Position numbers and translations under genes: made by a program. A DNA stretch of 64,000 nt, from positions 62,001-126,000 of the IMG/VR virus record IMGVR_UViG_3300042473_001265. One strand, written 5' to 3'. The notes under the pieces are model-generated. The model worked only from the letters and a program-made list of their open reading frames with translations. It searched no databases and had not been told where the DNA came from. Shown in pieces: positions 1 to 42,970 of the stretch; position 1 is the stretch's first letter, and every line of letters starts with the position of its first letter.

Positions 1-705
1 AGTCAGCGGGCCCATTGCGCTGGAAAGAAGAAGCAAAACGAAAGCGCAGAAATGGAAATGGTGTGTGAAATGTGTGGCCTGTGTGAAACACACGGCGATC
101 ATTCACAGGACAACTTGGATGAAGCATGCTGGGACACACACAAACAAGTTGGTATGAAGAAAAAAAGCAACAAAATGGTTCCCAACTGTGTGCCTAAAAA
201 CGAAGAAAAGGAGACCGCAATGACAGAAAATCAAGATGAATTGGCAAGAATACTGGAACTCAGCACAGGAGTAAGTGCAACAGATCGCGTGGAACTAAAC
301 GAAGAGTTTGATCTAATAGAGTCTATCATTGACAGTCTTGCAGATCGCAATGGGGTAGATGCAGAGACAATATGGGAAGACCTCGACTCACTGACAGATG
401 ATGAGTTGTATGTGTTTGCAGTGACTACGCCAATCATGGAAGATTGGCAAAAGGCCAACAAAAAGGATCGTACTGCCGGCATGAGTCAGAAAGCTGTCAA
501 CGCTTATCGCAGAGAAAATCCCGGGTCCAAACTAAAGACTGCTGTAACTACCAAGCCCAGCAAATTAAAGAAAGGTTCGAAGGCGTCGAAACGTCGTAAG
601 AGCTATTGCAGCCGCAGCCGTGGTCAAATGAAAATGCACAGCATCAGCTGTGCTAAAACTCCGGACAAGGCCATATGCAAAGCACGCCGTAGATGGAACT
701 GCTGA
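1..705 (+). CDS. 5'-truncated modular, basic phage protein, putative virion-internal polyprotein
   Basis: Frame is open from base 1 (SQRAHCAGKKK...) to TGA at 703-705. Short modules joined at x-x-E junctions; Lys/Arg/Cys-rich C-terminal module (KRRKSYCSRS...KARRRWNC). Confidence 0.7.
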   Translation, partial: SQRAHCAGKKKQNESAEMEMVCEMCGLCETHGDHSQDNLDEACWDTHKQVGMKKKSNKMVPNCVPKNEEKETAMTENQDELARILELSTGVSATDRVELNEEFDLIESIIDSLADRNGVDAETIWEDLDSLTDDELYVFAVTTPIMEDWQKANKKDRTAGMSQKAVNAYRRENPGSKLKTAVTTKPSKLKKGSKASKRRKSYCSRSRGQMKMHSISCAKTPDKAICKARRRWNC

Positions 706-706: not shown

Positions 707-994
707 ATGAGACTGTATGAATTTGCATTCGGTTCCGGCGTGGACGTCAATGAAAATCTTCGCGACTGGTTCAAAGATAAATGGGTACGCTTTGGTCCCG
801 ATGGTAAGATACGCGGCGACTGTGCTAGAGGGTCAGAATCTGAAGGCAAGCCCAAGTGTTTGCCACAGTCCAAAGCACATGCACTGGGCAAGAAAGGTCG
901 TGCAAGTGCAGCAGCCAGAAAACGCAGACAAGATCCCGACGCCAATCGTTCAGGCCCAGCAATAAATGTCAGTACAAAAGGAAAGAAAAAATGA
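707..994 (+). CDS. small basic phage protein (MRLYEF...WFKDKWVR module)
   Basis: ATG at 707 directly follows the previous stop; stop overlaps the next ATG (ATGA at 991-994). Confidence 0.7.
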   Translation: MRLYEFAFGSGVDVNENLRDWFKDKWVRFGPDGKIRGDCARGSESEGKPKCLPQSKAHALGKKGRASAAARKRRQDPDANRSGPAINVSTKGKKK

Positions 995-2529
995 ACATAA
1001 ATGATATCATTACAGAATCACAACAAAAATGTCCGCACTGTGGTGGACCTGTGGTGGAATATTCAGAACTAGGCGAGGGCAAAAAAGATGCCTGCTACTA
1101 CAAGGTCAAGGCATCGGCCAAAGTATGGCCCAGTGCCTATGCATCCGGTCGATTAGTTCAGTGTCGCAAAAAAGGTGCTGCCAACTATGGCAACAAGTCA
1201 GAAGGTGTGGCGGAAGGCTTATTAAACGAATTCGCACCAGGTGGAGCTGAAGGTGCTGGACCATATGCATATGGTATAGCTCTAAAAGAAATGGCAAAAT
1301 TGTATGCTGAAGGTGAGTTTGATTTAGTTGACGTCAGCGGCATGGACACAACAAGTCAAAACCAAAGTGATGCCGAAGAAATAAACAGCGTAGCAGATGC
1401 TTTTATCAATCGTGGAATGGAAGCTGGTAGAGAAGCATACCGCATGGTTGACACCATGGTGCAAGAGGACATGGATGAATACCTTGACGGCCAAGGATTC
1501 AATGTTGATGCTGATATCCATGTTGCATACAAAAATGACGTTGACCGTTATAATGCTTCTCCAGAGGGTCAGGCAGGAATCGCTGCGCATGAGGCTCGAC
1601 GAGAAGCCTGGCGGCGGTCAAAGCCGGCCAACCAAGTGATAATACAAGCAATTGATCCCAAAGGCAATTTGCCCATTGACAACACTCGCGTAGTGTTTGA
1701 TGCTAGAGAGTTTAACCTTGAGCCTGGCTTTCTTAAATACTCAATTGAACAAGATATTAAAAAGATCAAAAAGACAGCACCCGGTAGCTTGATTCAAATC
1801 ACCTTGGGCGGCAAACCAACTGATATTCAGGGTATTCTTGACCAATATAAACAGCTCAGCAAGGGGCCACACGATGTGGCGGAAAACTTTGCTGATGGGC
1901 GAAATCCCCAAGACAAGGGCGATGCCAAGCGTCACGGTATCAACACCAAGGCCAGTGTAAGCAGTCTACGCAAAACTGCCAAGCAAGGTGGACGCAAGGG
2001 ACAACTGGCACACTGGCTGGCCAACATGAAATCAGGCCGAGCCAAAAACGAAGGTGTGACAGAAAACACCGAGCCAGAAATGTTGTTCTACGCCAAATTG
2101 CCAGAGGGCACAAAAGTATATGCACGAGTAAAAGATGAACAGCAGTTGGCCAATCTACAACAACAGTATCGCGGCGCTGAAATCAAGACTTTTGATTTTC
2201 AGCGTCCTGATGTGCAGAAATGGCTGGAGGCCCGCAGAATCAATCTACGCAAATTTACACCGGGTATGGTACAAACCATGTATGATGTGATGGAAGCAGC
2301 ACACACCACCAATTTTAACGACGACGACTGGTATGAAATCAATCCTGACACCAAGACCATTGTGAGTCAGCGCGGGCCGCAGGCATATCACATGCCGTTT
2401 GGACAGCGACAGATCACCCTGCCCAATGGCAACATAGTTGTCAGAGGCATGCGAGCCAAAGGCATGGGTCTGGACACCGGACTTGGCAAACCGCAACAGA
2501 AAGAAGACGGTACCTGGGGCGCACTGTAA
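991..2529 (+). CDS. modular phage polyprotein, putative virion-internal protein
   Basis: ATGA-coupled start MNINDIITE. Modules separated by GVAEG, LNEF, VAEN, VTEN and VMEA junctions. Confidence 0.7.
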   Translation: MNINDIITESQQKCPHCGGPVVEYSELGEGKKDACYYKVKASAKVWPSAYASGRLVQCRKKGAANYGNKSEGVAEGLLNEFAPGGAEGAGPYAYGIALKEMAKLYAEGEFDLVDVSGMDTTSQNQSDAEEINSVADAFINRGMEAGREAYRMVDTMVQEDMDEYLDGQGFNVDADIHVAYKNDVDRYNASPEGQAGIAAHEARREAWRRSKPANQVIIQAIDPKGNLPIDNTRVVFDAREFNLEPGFLKYSIEQDIKKIKKTAPGSLIQITLGGKPTDIQGILDQYKQLSKGPHDVAENFADGRNPQDKGDAKRHGINTKASVSSLRKTAKQGGRKGQLAHWLANMKSGRAKNEGVTENTEPEMLFYAKLPEGTKVYARVKDEQQLANLQQQYRGAEIKTFDFQRPDVQKWLEARRINLRKFTPGMVQTMYDVMEAAHTTNFNDDDWYEINPDTKTIVSQRGPQAYHMPFGQRQITLPNGNIVVRGMRAKGMGLDTGLGKPQQKEDGTWGAL

Positions 2530-2565
2530 CACCCACAGCCGCAGCAGATTCTCATAAGTAACAGT

Positions 2566-2754
2566 ATGAAAGCCAAAGAAATCATCAGCGGAGCAAAACT
2601 ATGGACTGCAAAGATCCGTATTGAAAACCCACGCTATGTTTCTTTGGTTGATGTAACAACCTGGGCTCCCAACGCAGCAACAGCCCGTAATATCTTTAAA
2701 TCCCAATATAATATTCAAGATTGGCACATCGGGTCAATCAAACAAGTTCAGTAA
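2566..2754 (+). CDS. hypothetical protein
   Basis: 62-aa ORF preceded by a TAAGTA late-promoter-like motif. Confidence 0.6.
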   Translation: MKAKEIISGAKLWTAKIRIENPRYVSLVDVTTWAPNAATARNIFKSQYNIQDWHIGSIKQVQ

Positions 2755-2772
2755 ACTGCTACTAAATACAGC

Positions 2773-3054
2773 ATGAAACAGTTTGTTCGTGTATTGTGTG
2801 ATGTCAGTTGTGACTGGACAGGTACGCCGCCGGTGTACCGTGTGTATGTGGACGACGAATTGTTTGCTGAACGCACCTGGATCTGGCGTGATCAATATCT
2901 GGAAGAAGCGTTGCAAATTGAAGCTGAGCCCGGTGAATACACCATCACATATCAACTGGACAACACAGACACAGCAGTCATCCATGCTGACAACATGCGT
3001 GTGGATTATGGCACAGGCAAAATTAAAAACAATATATTAAGGATCAGCCGATGA
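2773..3054 (+). CDS. hypothetical protein
   Basis: 93-aa ORF preceded by TAAATA; stop overlaps the next start. Confidence 0.6.
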   Translation: MKQFVRVLCDVSCDWTGTPPVYRVYVDDELFAERTWIWRDQYLEEALQIEAEPGEYTITYQLDNTDTAVIHADNMRVDYGTGKIKNNILRISR

Positions 3055-3248
3055 GAGCAGCTGAATTCGTCAAAGAAGACGCCTCCGGAGGCAGCACCAG
3101 TGCTGGCTCCATTGCCCCTGTGGCCATGCCGCTAGGTGGAACGATCACAAGAACTGGTGGCAGTTTCTTTTCTGGTAAATACACAACGGATCCAACACCC
3201 AATACTCCGAGCTATATGAAAAAAGGAAAGAAACGCCGTGCTAACTGA
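3051..3248 (+). CDS. small protein with a capsid-targeting-like N-terminus (MRAAEFVKE)
   Basis: 65-aa ORF translationally coupled on both sides. Confidence 0.6.
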   Translation: MRAAEFVKEDASGGSTSAGSIAPVAMPLGGTITRTGGSFFSGKYTTDPTPNTPSYMKKGKKRRAN

Positions 3249-3678
3249 ACAACTAAAAACCTTGCTTGCAAGCCAATTTGCTTACTATTTAAAAGCTCAA
3301 TACTTTCACTGGAATGTGGAAGGATCAGACTTTGCACAACTACACAAATTCTTTCAAAAAATCTACGAAGATGCCTACAGCGCCGTGGATCCCATAGCCG
3401 AATACATTCGCAGTCTAGATGAATACGTCCCGGGCAGTCTTGCTCGTTATGCTGAATTATCAATCATACAAGATCAAACAAAAGTGCCACGGGCCAAACT
3501 GATGATACAAGAACTGCTGGCCGACAGTGAACCAATGATTGCTCTGTTAAACAGTTGCTTTGCTGAGGCAGAAGCTGAAAACAAACAGGACATTGCCAAC
3601 TTCATGGCTGAACGATTGAGTCAGCAGAACAAATATGCCTGGCAATTGCGCAGTTTCTTAAAGGACGCTAGGGAGTAA
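3238..3678 (+). CDS. dps: Dps / ferritin-like DNA-protection protein
   Basis: Dps signature YFHWNVEG..F..LH.FF..IYE...D.IAE.IR; GTG start. Confidence 0.85.
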   Translation: MLTEQLKTLLASQFAYYLKAQYFHWNVEGSDFAQLHKFFQKIYEDAYSAVDPIAEYIRSLDEYVPGSLARYAELSIIQDQTKVPRAKLMIQELLADSEPMIALLNSCFAEAEAENKQDIANFMAERLSQQNKYAWQLRSFLKDARE

Positions 3679-3679
3679 C

Positions 3680-4378
3680 ATGGACGAAATCTACACTATA
3701 ATGCAACGCCTGGCCTTGATTGAAGGCAGCATTACTCCTGCCAGTGTCAAAACTGGGCTGAATGCTCAACAAAAGTCGGTGCCGCAGATGCCGGCCCTGT
3801 ACAAAATGCCCAGCCAGGGTCCTGTGTTGGGCGGCAACCCCAATAAAAAAGTTCCAGGCAGCAGCTACATGGTCGGCTCAGGTGAAGGTGTAGACAATCC
3901 AGAAGATGTGTTGGAAGAAGAGGTCACCATCGAAGACCGGTTAGACAAAGTTAAAAAATCTTTTGCCGAGTATCTTGACAGTGTTGCTGAGGAAAAACAC
4001 GACACGGACTTGAAAGAAAAAGTCAAGAATGACAGTGACATCAAAGAAAAAAATACCAAAGACTCCAGCATCATAGCCAAACAGATTGTTGCTGTTGCAG
4101 AAAATCCAACAGAAGAAGATCCTGTTGTTCAGATGCCCACTGCCCCGGTTCAAGAACCCATCTACACAGAATCAGCACCGGTCAAGACACTGGCCTTGGA
4201 AGACGGTCGTGTGTGCGAAATACACGGCGACGAGCGTCGTGGATTTGAAATACGACACAACGGCCGTTCAATGAAGAGCCGTTTTAAAAATTTAGACCAA
4301 GCACACATGGCATTGGAAATGTATCTGGGGCGTGACAAAGCAACAGACGAGTCAGCAGATTATATAGAGGAAGCATAA
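3680..4378 (+). CDS. hypothetical acidic phage protein
   Basis: 232-aa ORF tightly packed between its neighbours. Confidence 0.65.
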   Translation: MDEIYTIMQRLALIEGSITPASVKTGLNAQQKSVPQMPALYKMPSQGPVLGGNPNKKVPGSSYMVGSGEGVDNPEDVLEEEVTIEDRLDKVKKSFAEYLDSVAEEKHDTDLKEKVKNDSDIKEKNTKDSSIIAKQIVAVAENPTEEDPVVQMPTAPVQEPIYTESAPVKTLALEDGRVCEIHGDERRGFEIRHNGRSMKSRFKNLDQAHMALEMYLGRDKATDESADYIEEA

Positions 4379-7300
4379 TGATTTTAAATGAGCTGTATAA
4401 ATTAAACGAGTTGAGTCCAGACACCTTGGCCAGTTACAAAAAAGCTGCTGGTGCCGATGCCACTGCTGCTGATGCGGCCGGTGATTATGCTCGTGGCAAC
4501 AAGAGATTCAAGGGCATTGTCAAAGCAACCAAGAAACAGTTTGCCAACGATACCAAAGGTGTGACAGAAAACCGTGAGTACAGTTCAGTGACCAATGCTA
4601 TCACTCGCAGAATCATAACACAACATCCCGAAGTGTTGGCCAAATACGGCCCCGATGTGGTTGGAATGGCCATTGACGAAATTGCAGACTTCGTAGGCGA
4701 TGTTGACGAAATTGGGTCAAGCGATGTTTCGGGCTGGACCAGTCAACTCATTCGTAGTCTGGCTAGATTTCCTCCGCTAAGAGAGCAAGGTGTGGCGGAA
4801 AAGTTAGGCGATAATAGACCCAAACTAGGCAGCGGTCGCGATCGTGGCAAGAGTGTTCGCAAATGGCGCCAGGACCGTGGCCTGGACGAGTCGGGCATGG
4901 CGGGAGGTCATAATAATTCTAAAACAATAATTACTGAGCCAAACAAACGCATACGAATTGACGAATCCTTGCTGTTGCAAGATCCTGTTTATCGCAGTTT
5001 CAAGCAAGTGGGACGCTATCTTGCCGAACGCCGCATGAGCGAAAAAGAAATTCTACAGGTGTTTGCCGACGCAGAAGCAGGAATGACCAACACAGCAACT
5101 GGCACTAATCGTACCATGCTGGGACGCGGCAAAGACAAGGCCACAGATCTTGCAGCCAGTATCAGAGATTCGGTCAACACGGTGTTGAGCGGTGTACAGA
5201 ATTCTGTGCCTGTGTCAGCAGTTGACACTGCTTATGATCAGGCCACTGATGCCCTGGCTGGCCTGGCCGGCGGACAAAAAGGTGCAGTAATGCAGGCGAT
5301 CAAAAAGTATCGCATGCTGGTAAAGAAATATCCCAAGTCTGCTGGATTTGCCAAAGCAGCATTGGTGGCCATTACAGGCCTGGCCACAGGTGGTGCAAGT
5401 CTTCCAGTCATTGCTGGCCTAACCTATGCCCTGGACGCAGCAATCAAAGGCGAAAAACTAAGCAGTGTGTTTGGCAAAGGTGCAGGTGCAGCAGCATTGG
5501 CCTGGGCAGGTCAATCTATTGCTGGTATGTTTGGGGCAGACCCAGCAGCTGGTGCGGCGGCCGCTGGTACCGATCCAGCTGCCGCGGCGTCTACATTTGT
5601 ACCTGGTCCTGACTTGCCTACATACACTGTGCAAGCCGGCGACACACTGAGTCAGATTGCTCAAGCAAACGGTGTATCGGTACAAGAACTAGTTGGGCTA
5701 AATCCACAATTGGCAGCAGACGCTGGCGCAGTAGGTGGCCAGAATCTCAATCCTGATGTGATATTTCCTGGACAAGAAATCACCTTGCCGCCTGCATCAG
5801 GAGCCGACGTTTATGCCGGCGGCGTGGGTACCAATGCCAACACCATGGCCGACATTGCCAAAGGCAATGTGCCTGACAGTTCTATCACACAAACTGGAAG
5901 CCTGGAACGCCTAGGAGGGGTTGACGCTGCTGATGTGAGTCAAGCTGCTGCTGATCCAGGAAAATATTCTGCTCCTATTGATTACAGTCAATCAGGACCA
6001 ACCAGCACTGACTCACTGGGACAAAAATTAGAATACGGCATTCCTGTCAACGACAAGGGTAGTTTTATTCCACCAAACGCTGGTTTGCCCGCTGACGAAC
6101 TGGCCAGACAAACAGCCGCATATGATGCCTGGAAGGCAGACTTTACCAAACGTTTTCCAAGTGCTGAACTACAGCCAGACGGATCTATGAAAGCTACCAA
6201 ACCAGGCCTAGCGCCCATGTATCCATCAAACTACACACCCGGCAGCGGCGGCAGCGGTTCAATAAGACCAAAAGGATTCACAGAATCTGTCAAGTTAATA
6301 AGATTGCCGGTCAGTCAGTTGATTGACAAAAAAACAACCATCTTGAATTGGAAATTGAACGAAAGCATAGGACGCAAGAGCAAAACTGTGAACTTAACCA
6401 CTGCTGGCGCCTACACAGTGTTTGAAAACGTTGACCGATACCGTAAAGCCATCATGGAACTCAAGGGTGTGCCTGGAAGCACACGCCCGGCATTGTATCG
6501 TCCCGACATGGCGGGTGCTCCAGTTGCACCTGCAGCCAAAAAACCCGGCCTGCTGAGCCGTGGGCTCAGCAAAGTAGGTGGTGCACTGAGCACATTTGGT
6601 CGTCAATTTACTACCAACGTGACCAAAGAAAAACTCAAGATGAACTGGCATCAAAAGGGAAAACCCAGTGATTCAGATCAATTGGCTGCTTGGTTGGTCA
6701 CACAAGGCGTGCCACAAGAAGTGGTAACTTCAGTTTACAGTAAAATGGGTCTACCAGTTGCTGCTGCTACAGTAACAGCTACACCAACAGCACCAACAGT
6801 AGCTACGCCAACAGCACCGACAACTGCTACACCAACAGCACCGACAACTGCTACACCAACAACAGCTACCGCCACTACAACCAAGCCAACAGCACCCGCA
6901 GCAGCAGCTGGCAAATTTCCAGGTGAGGATCCACAAGGTGCTGGCTATGTTGGTCGTAGAGAAGTTGCTCGTCGTCAAGCTGCGCGAGCTGCAGGTGCTG
7001 CTAAACCTGCACCTGCCAAGACTCCTAATTTCAGTGGCCCTACTGGATATTCCAGTGTGAATACCACAGTCAAACAACCAGCAAAACAACCAGCTGTGGC
7101 GGAAGGTGCCATGCCAGCGGCAGTGATTCGAATCAAAGAAAAAATTCGTCAAATGTCCGACGCCGAAAAGAAAGAATACTTCCAAGGCAAGACACGAGAG
7201 CAATTGCAACAACTGGCTCGACGACATGGCTACGGCGAAAATAGCAATGTGTACGCCAAGTATGCTGCACAAGGCCTGAATGAATTTGCTCCCGGTTCAG

Positions 7301-8778
7301 GTGGTGGCGACGACGACATCGGCGATGATCCTTACAAGTATCCCACGCCAGAGTCATATCGTCGCAGTGCGGATTACTTTGGTCAATTTGAAGCAGATCA
7401 TTTTGATCGTGAAGACTTTGATGATGCCACTGGCGTGTTCAAAGGCTACTGGGGTGATAAACAGATCGCCTATTTCAAATTTAATAAGCCAACTCAAACT
7501 GGCGGCGACGACCCGGGTCGGGGCTGGTACTATGAACCCCAGTCAGACAGCAGTGACAACACCGGTACTGGACCTGCAGTTGATCGGTCTGATGAACGCA
7601 AGCAACAAGAGTTAGGCATGATCCGTGCGTTTTTAAAATCTGGCAATCGACCAAATCCAGACAGTCAAATTGGTCGATTGATGAAAAAACATGGCATAGA
7701 GGAAGATCTAAGCCGCAGAGGATTCTTACAAGGCTTAGGTGCAGCAGCCGCTGGTGCTGTTGGCGTTGGCGCTGCTGGTTCTGCTCAAGCACGATCAACC
7801 GATGCGTCACGAAAAGAAGATGCTGAGGCCTTGGCATTACTGGCCAAAGGTATGACTCCTGAACAAGTTGCTAAAAAATTAGGAGTTCCTGGACCAAATC
7901 ACGGGCAGACCCATCATATGGGTGGTCGGTGGGCTTCAATCAATCGGGCTGCGGCGCAGCTTCAACGACAACGAGGCGCTGAGATAAAAGAAGGTGTGTC
8001 AGAGTCAGCAGGCGACGAGTTAGAATCCATGTTGAAGTCTGCTGGACTCCCGATCAGGGCCATACATGAGGCTGCTCCTCGCTCCAACCAGATCTGGACA
8101 GGAAATAAGCCAGCAGCTACATTGCCAACAACAACAGCAGCGGCGGCAGCTCCCAAAAAACCTGGATTGCTAACACCAAATAAATCTAAAGAAGCTGCTT
8201 ACGCAGCAGCAAATAAAGCTAAAGCAGCAGCACCTGCGCCAGCAGCAGCAGTACCTGTAGCTGCACCTGTAGCTGCGCCAGCAGCATCTGTGGCTGCAAA
8301 AGAACCAACACCTGATTCACCAACTGCTAGATATAGCGGCAAGACTGGTGAGTTAACTGCTTACGGCGCAGAATTAGCAGCGAAAGAAAAAGCTGATATA
8401 CAAGCTGCCCAAGCAGCAGCAGCAGCAAATAAAGCTAAAGCAGCACCAGCTGCACCTGTAGCTGCGCCAGCAGCACCAACAACGACTGGCATGTTTCAGC
8501 CGCGAACAACTTCACCAGCAACTAATCCAGCAGGTAAGAAAGTAGATATTGTGCAAGCAGCAAACACTGCCATGGCCGCAGGTGGAAATCCAGAAGCCGC
8601 AGCAATAGCTGCAATGAAGGCTAAAAATCCTAAATTAGCTGCAATGATGGCACAGGCAGGATTAGATGATCAAGGTAATGATATTGCAGCAGCACCTGTG
8701 GCGGAAGATTCTCTTGCTGGCATGAAAAGATTAGCGGGCATTGCGTCTGTTAGCCCATACAACAAACTTGTTAACTGA
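4378..8778 (+). CDS. 1466-aa modular protein with a LysM domain, Ala/Pro/Thr-rich linkers and an internal twin-arginine-like segment
   Basis: LysM motif YTVQAGDTLSQIAQANGVSVQELVGLNP...IFPGQEITLP at 5623-5790; hydrophobic Gly/Ala segment at about 5340-5580; many x-x-E junctions. Confidence 0.8.
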   Translation: MILNELYKLNELSPDTLASYKKAAGADATAADAAGDYARGNKRFKGIVKATKKQFANDTKGVTENREYSSVTNAITRRIITQHPEVLAKYGPDVVGMAIDEIADFVGDVDEIGSSDVSGWTSQLIRSLARFPPLREQGVAEKLGDNRPKLGSGRDRGKSVRKWRQDRGLDESGMAGGHNNSKTIITEPNKRIRIDESLLLQDPVYRSFKQVGRYLAERRMSEKEILQVFADAEAGMTNTATGTNRTMLGRGKDKATDLAASIRDSVNTVLSGVQNSVPVSAVDTAYDQATDALAGLAGGQKGAVMQAIKKYRMLVKKYPKSAGFAKAALVAITGLATGGASLPVIAGLTYALDAAIKGEKLSSVFGKGAGAAALAWAGQSIAGMFGADPAAGAAAAGTDPAAAASTFVPGPDLPTYTVQAGDTLSQIAQANGVSVQELVGLNPQLAADAGAVGGQNLNPDVIFPGQEITLPPASGADVYAGGVGTNANTMADIAKGNVPDSSITQTGSLERLGGVDAADVSQAAADPGKYSAPIDYSQSGPTSTDSLGQKLEYGIPVNDKGSFIPPNAGLPADELARQTAAYDAWKADFTKRFPSAELQPDGSMKATKPGLAPMYPSNYTPGSGGSGSIRPKGFTESVKLIRLPVSQLIDKKTTILNWKLNESIGRKSKTVNLTTAGAYTVFENVDRYRKAIMELKGVPGSTRPALYRPDMAGAPVAPAAKKPGLLSRGLSKVGGALSTFGRQFTTNVTKEKLKMNWHQKGKPSDSDQLAAWLVTQGVPQEVVTSVYSKMGLPVAAATVTATPTAPTVATPTAPTTATPTAPTTATPTTATATTTKPTAPAAAAGKFPGEDPQGAGYVGRREVARRQAARAAGAAKPAPAKTPNFSGPTGYSSVNTTVKQPAKQPAVAEGAMPAAVIRIKEKIRQMSDAEKKEYFQGKTREQLQQLARRHGYGENSNVYAKYAAQGLNEFAPGSGGGDDDIGDDPYKYPTPESYRRSADYFGQFEADHFDREDFDDATGVFKGYWGDKQIAYFKFNKPTQTGGDDPGRGWYYEPQSDSSDNTGTGPAVDRSDERKQQELGMIRAFLKSGNRPNPDSQIGRLMKKHGIEEDLSRRGFLQGLGAAAAGAVGVGAAGSAQARSTDASRKEDAEALALLAKGMTPEQVAKKLGVPGPNHGQTHHMGGRWASINRAAAQLQRQRGAEIKEGVSESAGDELESMLKSAGLPIRAIHEAAPRSNQIWTGNKPAATLPTTTAAAAAPKKPGLLTPNKSKEAAYAAANKAKAAAPAPAAAVPVAAPVAAPAASVAAKEPTPDSPTARYSGKTGELTAYGAELAAKEKADIQAAQAAAAANKAKAAPAAPVAAPAAPTTTGMFQPRTTSPATNPAGKKVDIVQAANTAMAAGGNPEAAAIAAMKAKNPKLAAMMAQAGLDDQGNDIAAAPVAEDSLAGMKRLAGIASVSPYNKLVN
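6781..6861 (+). repeat. 24-bp coding tandem repeat (TPTAPTTA), about 3 copies
   Basis: Near-identical units of acaccaacagcaccgacaactgct. Confidence 0.8.
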
Positions 8779-8782
8779 TTCC

Positions 8783-9142
8783 ATGAGAGCTAGTGAATTT
8801 GCAATTGTGAAAGAAGGTGCAGTGGAGGATCTTGAAAAAGATCTCGACGATCCTAAGGGTTACAGCGCAATTGACCACATGATGCAGACCATTGCCAGAG
8901 ACCACGGCATCACCGGCAAACAATTGCACGATGCGTTTGTGGCCAAGCATGGCGTGATACCTGACCGGTGGACACGAGATCAACTGCGCGAATTGACTTT
9001 TCTTGGATCAGAATGCACCCGAGACTGTTCGGGACACAGAGCCGGATATGACTGGAGCAAACGCAAAGGACTAAAGCTGGGCAATAGTCCATGGAGTCCC
9101 AGTTTCAACAAAGGCGCTGCACTAGCAGTGGCAGGAAAATAA
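8783..9142 (+). CDS. hypothetical two-module protein (MRASEFAIVKE...)
   Basis: ATG at 8783 follows the stop at 8778; C-terminal CTRDCSGHRAGYDW module. Confidence 0.65.
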   Translation: MRASEFAIVKEGAVEDLEKDLDDPKGYSAIDHMMQTIARDHGITGKQLHDAFVAKHGVIPDRWTRDQLRELTFLGSECTRDCSGHRAGYDWSKRKGLKLGNSPWSPSFNKGAALAVAGK

Positions 9143-9643: not shown

Positions 9644-12301
9644 TTGAGTTATGTAGACGCACTGTTTGATCGTGAGCACGATCGCATCCATGTTGTAGAA
9701 CGCCAAGGCGGCAAGAGAGTCTACAAAGAATATCCAGCCAACTACATCTTCTACTATGATGATGCCCGTGGCAAGTTCCGCAGCATCTACGACACACCTG
9801 TGTCAAGATTCAGCACACGCAACAACAAAGAATTTCGCAAAGAAGTTCGCATGCACGGCGGCAAGCAGTTGTATGAAAGCGATATCAATCCCATCTTTAG
9901 ATGCTTTGAAGAAAACTACAAAGATGCTGTTGCCCCAGAACTGCAAACGGCCTTTTTTGACATTGAAGTAGACTTTGACAAAGAGCGCGGGTTTTCTCCC
10001 ACTCACGATCCGTTCAATGCCATCACTGCCATTTCTGTTTATTTGAACTGGCTGGATCAGTTGGTCACATTGGCTGTGCCGCCCAAAAGTATCAGCATGG
10101 CTACTGCACAAGAACTGGTTGCTGAATTTGACAACACATTCTTGTTTGACAACGAAGCAGACATGCTGAAAATGTTTCTGGACCTGATTGACGATGCCGA
10201 TGTACTCAGCGGTTGGAATTCAGAGGGCTACGACATTCCCTACACAGTGAATCGTATCACTCGCATACTCAGCAAAGACGACACACGCAAGTTCTGTCTG
10301 TGGGGGCAGTTTCCCAAACCAAGGCAATTTGAACGCTTTGGTGCTGAACAACAAACATACGATCTGATCGGTCGTGTGCATATGGACTATATGCAGTTGT
10401 ATCGCAAATACACATATGAAGAACGACACAGCTACAGCCTGGATGCCATTGCCGAACACGAGTTAGGCGAGCGCAAGACACAGTTTGAAGGCACACTGGA
10501 TCAACTGTACAATCAACACTTCCGAACATTCATTGCCTACAACAGACAAGATACTGCACTGTTGGACAAGCTGGACAAGAAACTACAGTTTTTGGATCTG
10601 GCCAACACACTGGCACATGCCAACACTGTGTTGCTACAGACCACAATGGGTGCAGTTGCTGTGACTGACCAGGCCATTATCAACGAAGCACACGAGCGTG
10701 GCATGGTTGTGCCCAATCGCAAGCAACAGCTCACTGACGACAACACTCAGGCCGCAGGTGCCTATGTGGCATATCCCAAGAAGGGCATGAGTGAATGGAT
10801 TGGTTCGGTTGACATCAACAGCCTGTATCCATCGGCAATTCGTGCCATGAACATGGGTCCAGAAACTGTGATAGGTCAACTGCGACCCATCATGACTGAT
10901 CGTTACATCAAAGACAAAATGAACGGTGGCGCAAGTTTTGCAGCAGCGTGGGAGGGCCTGTTCGGCAGTTTGGAATACACTGCGGTGATGGAACAACAAC
11001 GCGGCACTGAACTCACAGTGGATTGGCAAGATGGCGAGACCAATGTGTATTCAGCGGCTGAGATGTGGTCCATTGTGTTTGATTCAAATCGTCCATGGAT
11101 CTTGACTGCCAACGGAACCATTATCACTTACGAAAAGAAAGGTATCATTCCCGGTCTGCTGGAACGATGGTATAGTGAACGCAAAGAAATGCAGGCCAAG
11201 AAAAAAGATGCCAAAGACAAAAAAGAAGAAGCATTCTGGGACAAGCGGCAACTGGTCAAGAAGATCAACTTGAACAGCTTGTACGGAGCCCTGCTGAATC
11301 CCGGTTGCAGATTCTTTGACCATCGCATTGGTCAGAGTACCACACTGACAGGCCGTGCCATTGCCCGACACATGGATGCTTACATCAATGAATGTATCAC
11401 TGGCAAGTATGATCATACCGGCGATGCTGTGATATACGGCGACACTGATTCATGTTACTTCAGTGCTTGGCCGGCAATCAAGACCGAAGTAGAGCAAGGT
11501 CGCATGGAGTGGAGCAAGGAAACTTGTATTGCTTTGTATGACTCAATTGCAGATCAAGTAAACGATTCATTCCCGGGTTTTATGGAGCAGGCATTCCATT
11601 GTCCGCGAGACATGGGCGGGTTGATCAAAGCCGGCCGCGAGCTGGTGGCAGATCGTGGCCTGTTCATCACAAAGAAACGCTATGCTGTAAACATCATTGA
11701 CCTTGAAGGCAAGCGATTGGACGTCAATGGTGCGCTGGGCAAGACAAAAGTCATGGGGCTTGACCTCAAGCGCAGTGATACACCCAAAGTGATTCAAGAC
11801 TTCTTGTTGGAGATTTTGAATCTTGCGTTGAGTGGAGCACAAAAAGAAAGCATCATTGAACGCATCCGTGAATTCAAATACGAGTTCATGGATCGACCCG
11901 GCTGGGAAAAAGGATCGCCCAAGCGTGTCAACAACTTGACCAAATATGCAGCAGAAGAAACACGCCAAGGCAAAGCCAACATGCCTGGCCATGTCAGAGC
12001 TGCAATGAACTGGAACAATCTGAGACGCATGAACAGTGACAACTATTCAATGCAGATTGTGGATGGTATGAAAACAATTGTGTGCAAACTCAAGAGCAAT
12101 GCACTGGGTTGGACCAGCATTGGCTATCCCACAGACGAACAACGCTTGCCGGAGTGGTTCAAGGAACTGCCGTTTGATGACGGATTGATGGAGGCCACTG
12201 TGGTGGATCAGAAGATTGACAACCTGTTGGGTGTAATGGAGTGGGACTTGCCCAGTGCAACCAACACAGAAAACACATTCCAAAATTTATTTGAATGGTA
12301 A
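9644..12301 (+). CDS. family B DNA polymerase (T4 gp43-like)
   Basis: Exo motifs FFDIEVD and GWNSEGYDIPY; polymerase motifs DINSLYPS, KINLNSLYG and YGDTDS. TTG start with GGAG Shine-Dalgarno at 9633. Confidence 0.97.
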   Translation: MSYVDALFDREHDRIHVVERQGGKRVYKEYPANYIFYYDDARGKFRSIYDTPVSRFSTRNNKEFRKEVRMHGGKQLYESDINPIFRCFEENYKDAVAPELQTAFFDIEVDFDKERGFSPTHDPFNAITAISVYLNWLDQLVTLAVPPKSISMATAQELVAEFDNTFLFDNEADMLKMFLDLIDDADVLSGWNSEGYDIPYTVNRITRILSKDDTRKFCLWGQFPKPRQFERFGAEQQTYDLIGRVHMDYMQLYRKYTYEERHSYSLDAIAEHELGERKTQFEGTLDQLYNQHFRTFIAYNRQDTALLDKLDKKLQFLDLANTLAHANTVLLQTTMGAVAVTDQAIINEAHERGMVVPNRKQQLTDDNTQAAGAYVAYPKKGMSEWIGSVDINSLYPSAIRAMNMGPETVIGQLRPIMTDRYIKDKMNGGASFAAAWEGLFGSLEYTAVMEQQRGTELTVDWQDGETNVYSAAEMWSIVFDSNRPWILTANGTIITYEKKGIIPGLLERWYSERKEMQAKKKDAKDKKEEAFWDKRQLVKKINLNSLYGALLNPGCRFFDHRIGQSTTLTGRAIARHMDAYINECITGKYDHTGDAVIYGDTDSCYFSAWPAIKTEVEQGRMEWSKETCIALYDSIADQVNDSFPGFMEQAFHCPRDMGGLIKAGRELVADRGLFITKKRYAVNIIDLEGKRLDVNGALGKTKVMGLDLKRSDTPKVIQDFLLEILNLALSGAQKESIIERIREFKYEFMDRPGWEKGSPKRVNNLTKYAAEETRQGKANMPGHVRAAMNWNNLRRMNSDNYSMQIVDGMKTIVCKLKSNALGWTSIGYPTDEQRLPEWFKELPFDDGLMEATVVDQKIDNLLGVMEWDLPSATNTENTFQNLFEW

Positions 12302-39005: not shown

Positions 39006-39095
39006 GGAAGCGTGGCAGAGTCCGGTTTATTGCAGCAGTCTTGAAAACTGCCGGCTCGAAAGGGTCCGTGAGTTCGAATCTCACCGCTTCCACCA
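39006..39095 (+). tRNA. tRNA-Ser(TGA)
   Basis: Cloverleaf with long variable arm, loop CTTGAAA, encoded CCA. Confidence 0.95.
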
Positions 39096-39104
39096 ATGCA
39101 ATTT

Positions 39105-39179
39105 GCGGCCATAGTATAACGGATAATACAGCGGTCTTCTACACCGTGAATGTGGGTTCGATTCCTGCTGGCCGCGCCA
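39105..39179 (+). tRNA. tRNA-Arg(TCT)
   Basis: Loop CTTCTAC, T-loop GGTTCGATTCC, CCA. Confidence 0.93.
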
Positions 39180-39184
39180 AACAT

Positions 39185-39270
39185 GCCCCCATAGACAAAT
39201 TGGTAAAGTCACTCTCCTCAAAAGGGAGTATTTTAAAAAAATCTGAGTTCGAATCTCAGTGGGGGCACCA
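39185..39270 (+). tRNA. tRNA-Leu(CAA)
   Basis: Loop CTCAAAA, AT-rich variable arm, CCA. Confidence 0.9.
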
Positions 39271-39311
39271 ATGGTTGACAAAGATCAACAAACAAGTTAT
39301 AATAGAACAAT

Positions 39312-39398
39312 GCTCTGATGGTGAAATAGGTAGACACAAGAGACTTAAAATCTCTCGCTCGCAAGGGTGTGCCGGTTCGATTCCGGCTCGGAGCACCA
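39312..39398 (+). tRNA. tRNA-Leu(TAA)
   Basis: Loop CTTAAAA, long variable arm, CCA. Confidence 0.95.
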
Positions 39399-39441
39399 TT
39401 TAAATAAGTCAGTTAATCAAGTTAAATTAAAGAAAGCAATC

Positions 39442-39615
39442 ATGACCCCAACAAAAACTTTTAAGTTCAGCAAGCGCAACAAAACATTGATGACCTTGCT
39501 GCCATTCAAAGATCAAACCATACGCAATGCGTTCAAGCGCATGATGGTTGATGCACAGCTATGCAGCGGTGTTGTTGTCAAAAGCAGCAAGGATCGTGGC
39601 ACAGATAGCAAGTAA
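39442..39615 (+). CDS. small basic hypothetical protein within the tRNA block
   Basis: 57-aa ORF MTPTKTFKFSKRNK... between two Leu tRNAs. Confidence 0.55.
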   Translation: MTPTKTFKFSKRNKTLMTLLPFKDQTIRNAFKRMMVDAQLCSGVVVKSSKDRGTDSK

Positions 39616-39623
39616 AGATATAT

Positions 39624-39700
39624 GCCCTGGTGGTGAAATTGGTAGACACAGCGGTCTTAGAAGCCGTAAGCTGAGAGTTCGAGTCTCTCCTAGGGCACCA
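39624..39700 (+). tRNA. tRNA-Leu(TAG)
   Basis: Loop CTTAGAA, short variable arm, CCA. Confidence 0.9.
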
Positions 39701-39722
39701 AGTATATAAAAGCAATCACACT

Positions 39723-40196
39723 ATGCCAAAATGTTATCAACTGATCGGAGTGCCTGCATCGGGCAAAACCACTTGGTACCGTAACCAAGAGTGGTTGGGT
39801 GAAGATAAAAAAGATCACAAGTATGTGTCCACAGATCAGCATGTGGAAGGATATGCCAATGATCAAGGCAAAACCTACAGTGAAGTGTTTGAGGAATACA
39901 TGCCCACTGCTGTCAAACAGATGCTGATAAATGTTAACATGGCTGCGGCATATCAGTTAGATATTGTTTGGGATCAGACCAGCACCACAGTTAAAAGCCG
40001 TCGAAAGAAGTTTGTTGAGTTGCCCAACTATGAGCACATTGCTGTGGTATTTCGGACACCCGATGCACCGGAACATGCTCGCAGATTAAACAGTCGTCCG
40101 GGCAAGCACATTCCTGATGAAATAGTACAAGATATGATCATCAAATTTGAAATGCCTACCGAAGAAGAAGGGTTTGTTGAAATCTGGCATGTGTAA
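39723..40196 (+). CDS. P-loop kinase (AAA_33 / polynucleotide-kinase-like)
   Basis: LIGVPASGKTT and IVWDQTS..R motifs. Confidence 0.85.
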   Translation: MPKCYQLIGVPASGKTTWYRNQEWLGEDKKDHKYVSTDQHVEGYANDQGKTYSEVFEEYMPTAVKQMLINVNMAAAYQLDIVWDQTSTTVKSRRKKFVELPNYEHIAVVFRTPDAPEHARRLNSRPGKHIPDEIVQDMIIKFEMPTEEEGFVEIWHV

Positions 40197-40203
40197 TACT
40201 GGG

Positions 40204-40689
40204 TTAGGCTCTGGATAGCATTACCAGGCTGAGAAAAAATGCCGGAATTGCAATGGCCACAAAACAAGAAAACACAAGAAATGTTTGTAATATGTCTTCT
40301 TGTGCTTTGCGATTGGCTGCTGCCATTTTTCTTTCAACTTCTGCTCGTTCTTTGTACATACGCACTCGCTCGGACTGCATTTGATCCCAGACATCTTTGT
40401 TGCCGGACCAGATCAGCATTTCTTTAAGTTCTTTTTCAGCGTCCCGCAGTGCTTTGCTGTGCATGGCAGTTTGCAAAGATCTTGAAGCAATTTCTCCATT
40501 GCTCAGCAAAGAAGTAGAATTCATCAGCTTGACATTGGCCACATAAACTTTGTCGCAATTTTGAAAAAATGAACTAAACTGTCCGTATAAGCTGTTGATG
40601 TCTTTGCCCATGGCAATGGCTTTTTTAATGCCGCCAATTGCTTGCTGTGCCGCAGTGAATGCCAGGCCAATTGTCACAGGGTCAATCAT
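40204..40689 (-). CDS. hypothetical protein with hydrophobic termini
   Basis: 161-aa ORF MIDPVTIGLAF..., coupled to 40686-40880. Confidence 0.6.
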   Translation of the reverse strand: MIDPVTIGLAFTAAQQAIGGIKKAIAMGKDINSLYGQFSSFFQNCDKVYVANVKLMNSTSLLSNGEIASRSLQTAMHSKALRDAEKELKEMLIWSGNKDVWDQMQSERVRMYKERAEVERKMAAANRKAQEDILQTFLVFSCFVAIAIPAFFLSLVMLSRA

Positions 40690-40880
40690 GATCGTAGAAT
40701 ATAAGGTTTAAATTGCTTTTCCCAGCGTCGACACCAAACTTCTCTATTGGGAGCTTGGCCCGACCAACTCCACAGTGTACACACCCATTGTTCATTCTTG
40801 TCTAATTTTTCCGTTGGTGGTGCCACAGCATTTAATGCTGTAGAGCCTGCCAACAACACAAACAACAAAGAATATTTCAT
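40686..40880 (-). CDS. small secreted hypothetical protein
   Basis: Signal-peptide-like N-terminus and a WVCTLWSW..WCRRW motif. Confidence 0.55.
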   Translation of the reverse strand: MKYSLLFVLLAGSTALNAVAPPTEKLDKNEQWVCTLWSWSGQAPNREVWCRRWEKQFKPYILRS

Positions 40881-40926
40881 TTACTATATTTAACTATAGT
40901 ACGATATAATTACAACAGCCGTTTGA

Positions 40927-40955
40927 TTGACTGCAAAGCCACAATCTGCTATAAT
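40927..40955 (+). promoter_or_regulatory. sigma70-type promoter
   Basis: TTGACT-N17-TATAAT before the phosphoesterase gene. Confidence 0.7.
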
Positions 40956-40986
40956 ATAGGTTACAACGCAAGAAAAGGAGGGCAAG

Positions 40987-41589
40987 ATGCCTAGTGTATT
41001 TTTAGTCAGCGACACGCACTTTGGACACATGGGTGTATGCCGCTTTACCCGCAACGATGGTGTCACCAAATTACGCCCGTGGGATAGTGCTGAGGAAATG
41101 GACGAAGCCATGGTCACGGCCTGGAACAAACGAGTTAAACCCACGGACAAGGTATATCACTTGGGTGATGTGGTTATAAACCGCAAAGCATTAAAGACTC
41201 TGGCCAGATTGAACGGCGACAAGGTGTTAATCCGTGGCAACCATGATATCTTCCGTGATGAAGAGTATCGTGAATACTTTCGTGAATTACGGGCGTACCA
41301 TGTGATGAACGGCATGATCCTTAGCCACATTCCTGTACACAGTGACAGCTTGGGGCGTTTTGGCGTCAACATACACGGACATACTCACGCAAATCGTGTA
41401 CGCAAAGCCCGTGGAGTTGATGCTAGAACTGGTGAAATCTTGTACAGCGACGAGATTGATCCACGCTATCATTGTGTATGCGTGGAACAGACTGACTTTG
41501 CACCGATACTGTTTGAAGATGTGATCAAACGCATCGAAGCAGAAGGTGGGTCAGTGGGTTTTCGTAACGGCAATGGTCCTACAATGTAG
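40987..41589 (+). CDS. calcineurin-like metallophosphoesterase
   Basis: SDTHFGH, HLGDVV, IRGNHD, LSHIP and HGHTH motifs. Confidence 0.92.
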   Translation: MPSVFLVSDTHFGHMGVCRFTRNDGVTKLRPWDSAEEMDEAMVTAWNKRVKPTDKVYHLGDVVINRKALKTLARLNGDKVLIRGNHDIFRDEEYREYFRELRAYHVMNGMILSHIPVHSDSLGRFGVNIHGHTHANRVRKARGVDARTGEILYSDEIDPRYHCVCVEQTDFAPILFEDVIKRIEAEGGSVGFRNGNGPTM

Positions 41590-41604
41590 GCCTGGAATTT
41601 TAAA

Positions 41605-41682
41605 GTAGCGGTGGCAGAGAGGCCCAATGCAAGGGATTGCAAATCCCTAAAACCGTGAGTTCGAATCTCACCCGCTACTCCA
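41605..41682 (+). tRNA. tRNA-Cys(GCA)
   Basis: Loop TTGCAAA, U73, CCA. Confidence 0.93.
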
Positions 41683-41803
41683 GTTAATTCACAGTTGAAT
41701 TTTAAAGAGTAAATAGAGTAGTCAGAGTGCAGGCTCTTTTTAAATCCTGCCTTTGTGTGGTACCGAGCAATGCTCCTGCTTGTATAAGCATCGGTACACT
41801 ATT

Positions 41804-41877
41804 GCGGGATTCGTAAAATGGTATTACCTTAGATTTCCAATCTAAAGTCGGGGGTTCGATTCCCCCATCCCGCTCCA
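41804..41877 (+). tRNA. tRNA-Gly(TCC)
   Basis: Loop TTTCCAA, U73, CCA. Confidence 0.93.
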
Positions 41878-41906
41878 GTTTTTATGTTGATCGATTTGAG
41901 AAAATT

Positions 41907-42407
41907 ATGCAAACCATTAATCTTGTAAAAGTAAAACAATTCATAGAAGCACAAGGCCCAATGACTCGCATCTATTTGGGTTGCGACAGCGAACGAATCC
42001 GAATCAACAACGAATGGTGGGCCGATTACACACTGGCCATTGTGGTGCATATCAACGGCAACAGCGGATGCAAGATATTTGGCGAAGTGTGCCGCGAGCG
42101 TGACTATGATCAAAAAACTGCACGGCCCAGCATGCGACTGATGAACGAAGTGTACAAAGTTTCTGACATGTATCATCGGCTGGGCGAAGTGCTGAACGGC
42201 CGAGAAGTGGAAGTACACTTGGACATCAATCCAGACGAACGCCACGGATCCAGCTGTGTGATTGCACAGGCCATTGGCTATATAAAAGGAACCTGCAACA
42301 TAACACCATTGGTCAAACCCGAAGCGTTTGCTGCCAGTTATGCTGCGGATCGCTTCAAAGGATTGGCCACTGCACGACATCGTGTTCGAGTCAATGAACG
42401 AGTTTAG
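41907..42407 (+). CDS. RNase H-like YkuK/DUF458 family protein
   Basis: IYLGCDS, RLMNEVYK, EVHLDIN and AASYAAD pattern. Confidence 0.75.
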   Translation: MQTINLVKVKQFIEAQGPMTRIYLGCDSERIRINNEWWADYTLAIVVHINGNSGCKIFGEVCRERDYDQKTARPSMRLMNEVYKVSDMYHRLGEVLNGREVEVHLDINPDERHGSSCVIAQAIGYIKGTCNITPLVKPEAFAASYAADRFKGLATARHRVRVNERV

Positions 42408-42494
42408 GAAGTGTGGCTGAGTGGCCTAAGGCAGCTGATTACTAATCAGTCATATCGCAAGGTATCGTGGGTTCGAATCCTACCACTTCCGCCA
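42407..42494 (+). tRNA. tRNA-Ser with the rare anticodon ACT
   Basis: Ser-type long variable arm and G73; stem GCTGA/TCAGT with loop TTACTAA; CCA. Confidence 0.85.
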
Positions 42495-42500
42495 ATGTTA

Positions 42501-42526
42501 AAAAGGCTACTTTGATAGCCTTTTTT
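42501..42526 (+). terminator. intrinsic terminator after tRNA-Ser(ACT)
   Basis: AAAAGGCTA-ctttga-TAGCCTTTTTT. Confidence 0.7.
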
Positions 42527-42561
42527 CTTGACTTTTAAACAAAAGGCATATATAATACACT

Positions 42562-42660
42562 ATGATTACGCAAATCACATTCACTGCTAACAACACGCCG
42601 GCCATCTATGAGATAGCCTATGAGCGTGATTGTCCCAGGGGTCTTTGCCATTGTAGTTAA
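42562..42660 (+). CDS. leader peptide 2 (32 aa) of a putative tRNA-operon attenuator
   Basis: MITQITFTANNTPAIYEIAYERDCPRGLCHCS; TATAAT at 42549 suggests a near-leaderless start. Confidence 0.7.
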   Translation: MITQITFTANNTPAIYEIAYERDCPRGLCHCS

Positions 42661-42682
42661 CAAAAGTACTACATTCACAAAG

Positions 42683-42707: not shown

Positions 42708-42717
42708 ATGGCGCTGG

Positions 42718-42964: not shown

Positions 42965-42970
42965 AAATTT

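Follow-up and report, generated by a model that had tools for sequence, protein, structure and literature searches.

A T4-like N-terminal tag and a recurring [VIL]-x-E mark suggest protease-processed modular precursors in a jumbo phage

What a phage head carries besides DNA, and how these proteins are loaded, is understood in only a handful of model phages. In T4, internal proteins carry the capsid-targeting sequence MKTYQEFIAE, whose residues 4 and 7 have a role in targeting and whose residues 8 and 10 have one in processing; with Asp at the cut position, cutting stops and targeting does not (PMC9026906). In phiKZ, 201phi2-1 and SPN3US, head-internal proteins are cut after Glu at a three-residue motif, at several sites per precursor (PMC9026906). 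Polyvalent proteins are described as cutting themselves with an embedded metallopeptidase, and they have been predicted to be packaged and delivered together with the DNA (Iyer et al. 2017, PMC5512222). Here we compare with these systems a cluster of ten open reading frames (ORFs) that opens a 64,000-nucleotide stretch of the virus record IMGVR_UViG_3300042473_001265. This whole stretch, bases 62001-126000 of the 340,172-bp record (rated 98% complete), is referred to as the window.

The genome is that of a 340-kb jumbo phage with T4-type head genes: a portal (Portal_T4, 2.5e-103), a gp21-type prohead protease (Peptidase_S77, 9e-25; genome 197398-198045) and a capsid protein resembling T4 gp23 structures (4e-39). 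The ten ORFs all lie on the + strand and are tightly packed or overlapping (Table 1); we name window ORFs by their start position, so that w991 is ORF 991-2529. Comparisons were made with 80 related loci from the IMG/VR database, found with ORF 991-2529 as query, plus the phage's own genome. From these sequence comparisons we conclude, with moderate confidence, that proteins bearing a short N-terminal tag and internal [VIL]-x-E marks would be head-packaged modular precursors that the prohead protease dices into pieces.

The tag carries much of this argument. The original prediction had singled out six capsid-targeting-like N-termini, and all of them turn out to lie at true gene starts (707 MRLYEF, 991 MNINDIITE, 2566 MKAKEII, 3051 MRAAEFVKE, 4378 MILNELYKLNE and 8783 MRASEFAIVKE), each of which follows or overlaps the preceding stop codon. 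Six of the 441 ORFs of the genome start with MR..EF, where 0.04 would be expected, and none of 2188 internal Met residues is followed by this pattern. The comparative set has 4394 unique first-ATG ORFs. Of these, 200 open with M-[RK]-x-x-E-[FILV], and 198 of the 200 share the strand of the cluster. These 200 unique starts read M1, R/K2, A3, x4, E5, F6 (73%), [ILV]7 (77%), x8 and E9 (67%). With nine residues, the consensus MRAxEF[ILV]xE falls one short of the T4 capsid-targeting sequence; its F6, [ILV]7 and E9 align with T4 F7, I8 and E10. A T4-type tag would have about ten residues, an aromatic or hydrophobic targeting core and [I/L]-x-E at its end, and the starts seen here fit this description. 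A second start type, M-x-[IL]-x-[DE]-[LI]-[FYI], covers MNINDIITE and MILNELYKLNE. The codons for A3, E5, F6 and E9 vary synonymously near background use. Hence, selection acts on the peptide.

The tag is not confined to this phage. A strict DNA pattern of it, run against IMG/VR, finds at least 119 further stretches; among the 156 tag matches listed, 145 stand at ORF starts, often two or three within a few kb. The same pattern has three matches in the phage's own genome. Among five cultured phages it has one match in Sinorhizobium phage Phosso and none in Agrobacterium phage Atu_ph07, Vibrio phage 2.275.O, CBB or S-SM1, the first four of these five sharing the DNA polymerase type of our phage. 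No culturable carrier of the tag was identified among them. The system does not include every ORF of the region: w2773 and the Dps gene are untagged in all relatives examined, and the tag-like start of w2566 lacks Glu where the cut would be expected. Distant relatives of w2566 begin MRAKEFLRE.

Tagged genes also occur elsewhere in the genome. Positions 234156-234913 (L004:5156-5913) hold two adjacent ORFs of about 125 residues that start MRATEFVLE and MRAREFIAE and are without a Pfam match; this pair recurs, adjacent, in many of the IMG/VR contigs found with the tag pattern. At 290809-291306 (L005:10809-11306) a protein with an HD_4 domain (the RelA/SpoT-type hydrolase domain, 1e-14) starts with MKINELLES, which is of the second tag type and makes this protein, by its sequence, a candidate packaged enzyme. 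The tagged genes at window positions 707, 3051 and 8783 and at genome positions 234156 and 234527 begin ATGAGAGC... and for the most part show no Shine-Dalgarno site that could be recognised, in contrast to the strong site of the capsid gene. Tagged genes may thus be translationally coupled or have a special context for initiation.

The second element is the mark. The junction tripeptides named in the original prediction are all present: VAE at E75 and E298 of w991 and E141 of w4378, LNE at E80 of w991 and E11 and E969 of w4378, VTE at E358 of w991 and E64 of w4378, and IEE (E1109), VSE (E1209) and IHE (E1231) in w4378, the last two being without comparative support. To see where such marks fall, we took the first conserved residues of six unrelated modules as anchors and tallied the unique contexts upstream of them; the background for [VIL]xE, per position, is 0.010. 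Glu at P1 together with Val, Ile or Leu at P3 precedes NLRDWFK (module a) in 43/45 contexts, NFADG (module B) in 24/28, LxFLGS (module h) in 24/24, all 24 of them L-x-E, and KLGDNRP in 3/3. For KDACY (module b) the count is 28/42, with Glu at P1 in 38/42, and for CWxTHK (module d) the mark is found in 24/25 contexts, one residue earlier. P2 and P4-P6 vary at these junctions.

We also considered the bare density of [VIL]xE and rejected it as evidence. At 1.1-4.3 per 100 residues in most window ORFs (none in w2566), it is close to the proteome average of 1.26, and within folded domains, Dps among them, many of these tripeptides are surely left uncut. The signal lies in the position of the marks at boundaries and in the excess of GVAE and QGVAE. 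Counting words in 4131 unique ORFs, and requiring differing flanks on both sides, we find that the top tetrapeptide is GVAE, with 94 contexts against 8.2 expected, and the top pentapeptide QGVAE, with 58 against 0.35, a 164-fold enrichment. Other words recur next to the marks. ENFADG[KR] runs on into at least three unrelated sequences, and the EFA-GSG core of the w707 leader (MRLYEFAPGSG) reappears inside other proteins as LNEFAPGSG.

Modules are shuffled among relatives. ORF 991-2529 has a mosaic make-up: the similarity of relatives to residues 1-76 breaks off exactly at GVAE/G (the slash stands for the junction), and residues 299-352 are a separate module B. Elsewhere module B is a stand-alone ORF of 63-64 residues behind MRAAEFVIDE or MRADEFISE, the start of a 170-residue ORF, or the C-terminal end of proteins of 1389-2560 residues. 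Depending on the phage, each module either follows a tag directly or lies deep within a giant protein, examples of the former being MRADEFVTE/NLRDWF, MRYREILE/ACWDGY, MDINEIIAE/DWQKTNK, MKSTEFLFE/LSPATLASYKK and MRAKEFTTE followed by module h. The PHROGs database gives matches to families of unknown function only, and single window ORFs cover short parts of much longer profiles, a first sign of modularity.

One could argue that nothing is cut at all, and that the conserved start, QGVAE, NFADG and FAPGSG are recombination joints or linkers in proteins that act at full length. Conserved gene-boundary sequences in T4-type phages have a suggested role in module shuffling between genes, and here shuffling is extreme, the conserved words stand exactly at the shuffling points and position 2 of the tag has a nucleotide-level bias (AGA in 91%). 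We nevertheless think that this explanation is very unlikely, for the following reasons. First, the other codons of the tag (A3, E5, F6, E9) vary synonymously at background rates. Second, P2 is free while Glu at P1 and Val, Ile or Leu at P3 are retained. Third, ordinary linkers are not specific pentapeptides at 164-fold enrichment. Fourth, the Tat-like signals that follow some marks (see below) would make sense only with a new N-terminus. We are fairly confident that cutting takes place at the marks, as their placement suggests.

A scan for twin-arginine translocation (Tat) signals gave ten unique segments (RRGFL-GLGAAA...), all of them 2-4 residues after [VIL]xE. Eight of the ten lie far inside proteins, at residues 81 to 1113, and one stands directly behind the tag MRAVEFIAE. 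The loci are window 7705-7791, an ORF upstream of the window (L003), L077:74-694 and seven others. In the 1466-residue ORF w4378 the segment reads GIEE/DLSRRGFL...AQA, at residue 1110/1113 of 1466, and that of the upstream ORF is at residue 604. A Tat signal works only near a free N-terminus. In w4378 the segment is not at the N-terminus of the precursor and would come to lie at one only after a cut at GIEE. Tat-like signals placed just behind marks thus argue for cutting, with a new N-terminus created there, although assigning these internal segments to Tat on sequence grounds is tentative.

The genome itself offers a link between a tagged ORF and the head. The segment FVKE/DASGGSTSAGSIA of w3051 (window 3051-3125) resembles YLKE/NASAGSTASGNIA of the capsid protein (residues 39-55; gene at genome position 199284), and these capsid residues align where mature T4 gp23 begins. 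When the genome is translated in six frames, the shared 15-residue pattern turns up at these two loci only, and it is kept in the family of w3051 and in the capsid proteins of relatives. By this comparison w3051 repeats the presumed maturation or cut region at the N-terminus of the capsid protein. It may bind where the N-arm of the capsid protein binds, or just share the residues that the protease prefers downstream of its cut.

Relatives provide evidence for a place in the virion. In T4-like cyanophages modules a, b, d and DUF6321 sit in one protein, whose gene lies between terS and terL. The S-SM1 protein SSM1_115 matches w707 (3e-12), w991 (1.6e-17) and w52 (8e-14). SSM1_115 (T4-GC119) is listed among the structural proteins, purified virions of S-SM1 having yielded 13 peptide counts for it (PMC3037559 Table S8), and the equivalent S-CREM2 gene product, ORF137, is represented by 4 peptides (4.1% coverage) in CsCl-purified virions (PMC10665884 Table 3). 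Together with the gp21-type protease in our genome, these homologues in the virions of two cyanophages support the idea of processed modular precursors. As a control, DUF6321 of a pelagiphage podovirus is a 93-residue stand-alone protein without a tag and without [VIL]xE; its gene is surrounded by small hypothetical genes, close to a replication gene, and the 5 kb examined contain neither a structural gene nor one for a head protease. The likeness to T4 capsid targeting, the logic of the [VIL]-x-E junctions and the notion of protease-processed modular precursors are hence the parts of the original prediction that gain independent comparative support.

For this phage we infer targeting, cleavage, retention in the head, injection and the role of the pieces as follows. 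The region would be the core of a cluster encoding precursors addressed to the assembling head. Its tag would be the counterpart of T4 MKTYQEFIAE, the aromatic/hydrophobic core bringing the protein into the scaffolding core of the prohead and the terminal [ILV]-x-E serving as a cut site for the gp21-type serine protease of the genome. The same [VIL]-x-E mark, mostly as (Q)GVAE and often followed by NFADG or FAPGSG, would part unrelated modules in the long proteins, and the activated prohead protease would dice these precursors into many pieces. That the prohead protease acts on packaged precursors seems to us reasonably likely from the sequence evidence. The pieces would remain in the head with the DNA and exit with it at infection, and those with a Tat-like start after cutting could be exported to the host periplasm. 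That the pieces are delivered into the host and function there as proteins, read from sequence as it is, we would put at slightly less than an even chance.

Several observations weigh against this reading. The cyanophage virion homologues have neither the tag nor QGVAE, and the virion data come from these tag-less proteins of S-SM1 and S-CREM2, not from tag-bearing phages. The gene cluster adjoins the DNA polymerase gene and not the head module, which lies about 125 kb downstream. The T4 late-promoter word TATAAATA shows no enrichment in the genome, with 4 and 1 occurrences where 13 would be expected on each strand; it is not used here and was dropped as a timing cue. The RR-x-F-L motif, the hydrophobic stretch and the A-x-A end of the Tat-like segments are visible, but their Pfam scores stay below the cut-offs (TAT_signal 17.4 vs 22.7 bits; UCR_Fe-S_N 19.6 vs 24). 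Glu at P1 and Val, Ile or Leu at P3 could partly be inherited module residues. The Arg2 codon is AGA in 91% of tags and many starts read ATGA; position 2 may reflect a start/stop overlap or an initiation constraint, and the AGA bias, the ATGA overlaps and the weak Shine-Dalgarno sites together point to an added constraint at the nucleotide level. A predicted complex of the protease with w3051 scored 0.00, which is evidence neither way. Finally, while the relatives G003 and G006 carry an S77 protease, searches of G002 (343 kb, rated 99% complete, holding locus L028) found no S77, S78 (HK97-type), gp23-type capsid or T4 portal, and this genome has the grammar of tag, QGVAE and Tat-like signals in common with our phage. 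Either the head genes of G002 have diverged too far, or a different Glu-specific protease serves the grammar there.

Some of these points would fit with cutting in the cytoplasm of the infected cell, by the neighbouring zincin-type peptidase or by a host enzyme. The modules would then act there or be exported through Tat, never being packaged, and in this pathway the tag would serve for recognition or assembly. The cluster runs about 6 kb further upstream of the window, where a 1447-residue ORF has matches to Amidoligase_2, and Peptidase_M48 (4.8e-8, 33.5 bits) and weak ones to NTP_transf_2, SprT-like (below its cut-off) and M78. This ORF is a typical polyvalent protein, and autoprocessing by such domains is the published model for that class (PMC5512222). 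The cluster also adjoins replication genes, G002 has the grammar with no gp21-type protease detected, and Tat export is most easily pictured in the cell that produces the proteins. We still regard cytoplasmic cutting as improbable. A [VIL]-x-E cut after Glu is the signature of a gp21-type protease and not of a zincin (PMC9026906), the tag matches the T4 capsid-targeting sequence position by position, w3051 duplicates the cut region of the capsid protein, and homologues are found in purified virions. Moreover, at most tag-bearing loci the protein itself lacks a peptidase domain; the embedded zincin-like peptidase is found in the upstream ORF only, being absent from w991, w4378 and the small ORFs.

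If the precursors are packaged and diced by the prohead protease, as we favour, the pieces would be of three kinds. The first would be small, strongly basic, Cys-bearing modules (a, b, B, d, DUF6321 and h), and the second acidic spacers; Lys and Arg outnumber Asp and Glu by 27 to 4 in DUF6321, 22 to 8 in module a and 13 to 5 in module B. The third would be a few larger domains: LysM and a hydrophobic segment in the window, and an amidoligase, M48/SprT-like peptidases and a nucleotidyltransferase just upstream. It is possible, if doubtful, judging by analogy, that enzymes are a minority among the pieces and that the basic Cys-bearing ones are not effectors but DNA-associated core proteins, neutralising as well as organising the 340 kb of DNA. 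Their basic charge is one reason, and T4 internal proteins are likewise highly basic, at about 1000 copies per head. Conservation is another: module a has 87% mean column identity over 45 contexts, the module b region of w991 is 91-96% identical to cyanophage proteins, and the two modules are thus conserved at 87% to >90% across very different phages. Conservation this extreme is easier to reconcile with a universal ligand like DNA than with a host-specific target; DNA-associated core proteins account for it no worse than host-specific effectors do. The core proteins of adenovirus, which are matured by a protease, offer an analogy. On the other hand, DUF6321 stands alone in the podovirus, away from any structural or head-protease gene in the stretch examined, and LysM, the Tat-like signals, the amidoligase and the peptidases misfit pure DNA packing; together with the hydrophobic segment, they fit envelope-directed or conflict functions. 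No DNA-binding fold was identified in the modules, the AlphaFold2 model of module a reaching a predicted local distance difference test (pLDDT) value of 65 and a predicted template modelling score (pTM) of 0.38, values too low for comparing folds.

Table 1. Features of the cluster in window coordinates (a slash marks a junction)
Feature	Position	Strand	Description
ORF 1-705	1-705	+	C-terminal 234 residues of a 261-residue ORF begun 80 nt before the window with MKTKEFTTE
Contents of ORF 1-705		+	Cys-rich stretch; module d (A-CWDTHK..., from nt 124, LDE before it); DUF6321 (from nt 442, IME before it)
Leader of ORF 707-994	707-754	+	16 residues, MRLYEF...DVNE
Module a (NLRDWFK...)	755-991	+	79 residues; 22 K+R vs 8 D+E
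Leader of ORF 991-2529	991-1017	+	MNINDIITE, 9 residues, second leader type
CPHCGG Zn-ribbon-like stretch and module b (KDACYYK...)	1018-1215	+	Ends exactly at GVAE (E75)
GLLNE/FAPGG junction, then acidic middle domain	1216-1884	+	Domain of about 200 residues; ends at DVAE (E298)
Module B (NFADGR...GRAK)	1885-2064	+	Basic; ends at GVTE
C-terminal domain of ORF 991-2529	2065-2529	+	154 residues
ORF 2566-2754	2566-2754	+	62 residues; tag-like MKAKEII start without Glu at the cut position
ORF 2773-3054	2773-3054	+	93 residues; untagged in every relative
ORF 3051-3248	3051-3248	+	65 residues: tag MRAAEFVKE (nt 3051-3077), then DASGGSTSAGSIA, then basic tail
Dps/ferritin-like gene	3238-3678	+	GTG start; untagged, never fused
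ORF 3680-4378	3680-4378	+	232 residues, acidic; conserved 15-residue start ending LIE/G
ORF 4378-8778	4378-8778	+	1466-residue putative modular precursor
Leader of w4378	4378-4410	+	MILNELYKLNE
Module e (LSPDTLASYKK...) of w4378	4411-4569	+	Ends at GVTE
QGVAE/KLGDNRP module of w4378	4801-4890	+	Basic
Hydrophobic segment of w4378	about 5356-5421	+	
LysM (PF01476) of w4378	5623-5790	+	42.6 bits vs 20.9 cut-off
GLNE/FAPGSGG junction of w4378	about 7276-7310	+	
GIEE/Tat-like signal of w4378	7705-7791	+	
GVSE of w4378	7993-8004	+	
IHE of w4378	8062-8070	+	
ORF 8783-9142	8783-9142	+	119 residues; tag MRASEFAIVKE at 8783-8815
Module g of w8783	8816-8992	+	Ends at LRE
Module h (LTFLGSECT...) of w8783	8993-9139	+	Cys-rich

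In the ten ORFs Pfam names only four domains: DUF6321 (PF19846; 38.8 bits, over the 28.5 cut-off) in ORF 1-705, ferritin/Dps (PF00210, Ferritin; 78.9 bits vs 24.5), and LysM and a sub-threshold helix-turn-helix in the 1466-residue ORF. The ESM Atlas gave no usable match for the C-terminal domain of w991. Being untagged throughout, ORF 2773-3054 is probably a neighbour and not a substrate, and the 15-residue start of ORF 3680-4378 is possibly a further leader type. The Dps gene keeps its order between the tagged 65-residue ORF and ORF 3680-4378 in many relatives. Other upstream members of the cluster are a GTG-start ORF, (M)RALEFLHEDE, and an ORF beginning MRASELLNE. Two genes upstream of the cluster lies a cytidylyltransferase-like gene (L003:3576-4352, genome 53576-54352); in P-SSM4 a cytidylyltransferase adjoins the module-bearing gene, and the cyanophage cytidylyltransferase is itself among the proteins detected in the virions of S-SM1 and S-CREM2.

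A megablast search of the region against 50,697 phage records found no near-identical DNA, and tblastn searches in cultured phages gave one weak match for module a and none for module B. Downstream of the cluster, the family-B DNA polymerase (window 9644-12301) shares 42-49% identity with its counterparts in Phosso, Atu_ph07, Vibrio phage 2.275.O and the Rak2/CBB group. As listed, this ORF has TTG as its first codon, and the Atu_ph07 homologue is annotated as two separate coding sequences. Further along, at 39006-49767, an array of 30 tRNA genes includes tRNA-Arg(TCT), the reader of the AGA codon that prevails at Arg2 of the tag. A permuted tmRNA candidate proposed by ARAGORN (49362-49767) overlaps the last tRNA of this array.

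How general could the arrangement be? We suggest only tentatively, as an extrapolation from the tag and mark patterns, that many uncultured aquatic phages, often giant ones, may use a universal 9-residue address tag and (Q)GVAE or [VIL]-x-E marks to load and dice shuffled cassettes, some pieces of which the host Tat system would export. If this is true, the packaged, and probably injected, proteome of many uncultured phages would be predictable from sequence, and it would be a source of candidate early counter-defence or DNA-organising proteins. The T4 capsid-targeting principle would then be old, widespread and extended to a polyprotein logic. Tag and cut site would make a cassette for loading foreign proteins into large capsids. 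The Tat signal exposed by a cut, if real, would be a new viral route for placing proteins in the host periplasm; for such a two-step delivery, by injection and then by the Tat system of the host, we found no published precedent.

Among the closest known relatives of the arrangement, in terms of logic, are IPI, IPII and IPIII, which are internal proteins of T4. Pfam and PHROGs scans of all ten ORFs gave no internal-protein family, so that homology is not indicated. As in T4, a short N-terminal tag built around E-F-[I/V/L]-x-E terminates in Glu as the cut site, here a predicted one, one tag is common to diverse unrelated cargos, the cargo is basic, and a gp21-type protease accompanies T4-type portal and capsid genes. 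Unlike in T4, the tag is a residue shorter (MRAxEF[ILV]xE against MKTYQEFIAE) and the cut mark is reused within long multi-module precursors, whereas T4 internal proteins are described as being cut only once.

The cyanophage protein T4-GC119 (SSM1_115; ORF137) shares homologous modules a, b, d and DUF6321 with ORFs 1-705, 707-994 and 991-2529, and some of these stand behind [VIL]-x-E there too, for example IQE before module b. It is, however, encoded by a single gene between terS and terL and lacks both the MRAxEF tag and QGVAE. Polyvalent proteins are likewise long and built of many unrelated, shuffled domains; several unrelated conflict-type domains are present in the upstream ORF, with its zincin peptidase, amidoligase and nucleotidyltransferase, and w991 and w4378 are mosaic. 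A position beside portal, terminase or virion genes is found for the cyanophage homologues and not for our cluster. Furthermore, a shared N-terminal tag or cut word is not described for polyvalent proteins (PMC5512222), the punctuation here is of the prohead-protease type, and most precursors are without a peptidase domain.

The inner-body and ejection proteins of phiKZ-type phages come close in another respect, having a gp21-like protease that cuts after Glu at several sites per precursor. They are cut at S/A-x-E, in contrast to the Val, Ile or Leu found at P3 here (43/45, 24/28 and 24/24 contexts for modules a, B and h); no sequence similarity was seen, and a shared N-terminal tag is not described for them. 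RNA-virus polyproteins offer an analogy, with a short recurring word at every module boundary for one viral protease, but here we are dealing with a DNA phage and accessory precursors, and cutting would take place inside the capsid. In the open-access papers and preprints searched, neither the tag nor the QGVAE word nor the Tat arrangement was found described. The T4 targeting principle is itself known; the difference from it here is that the cut mark is reused as punctuation in long, shuffled precursors.

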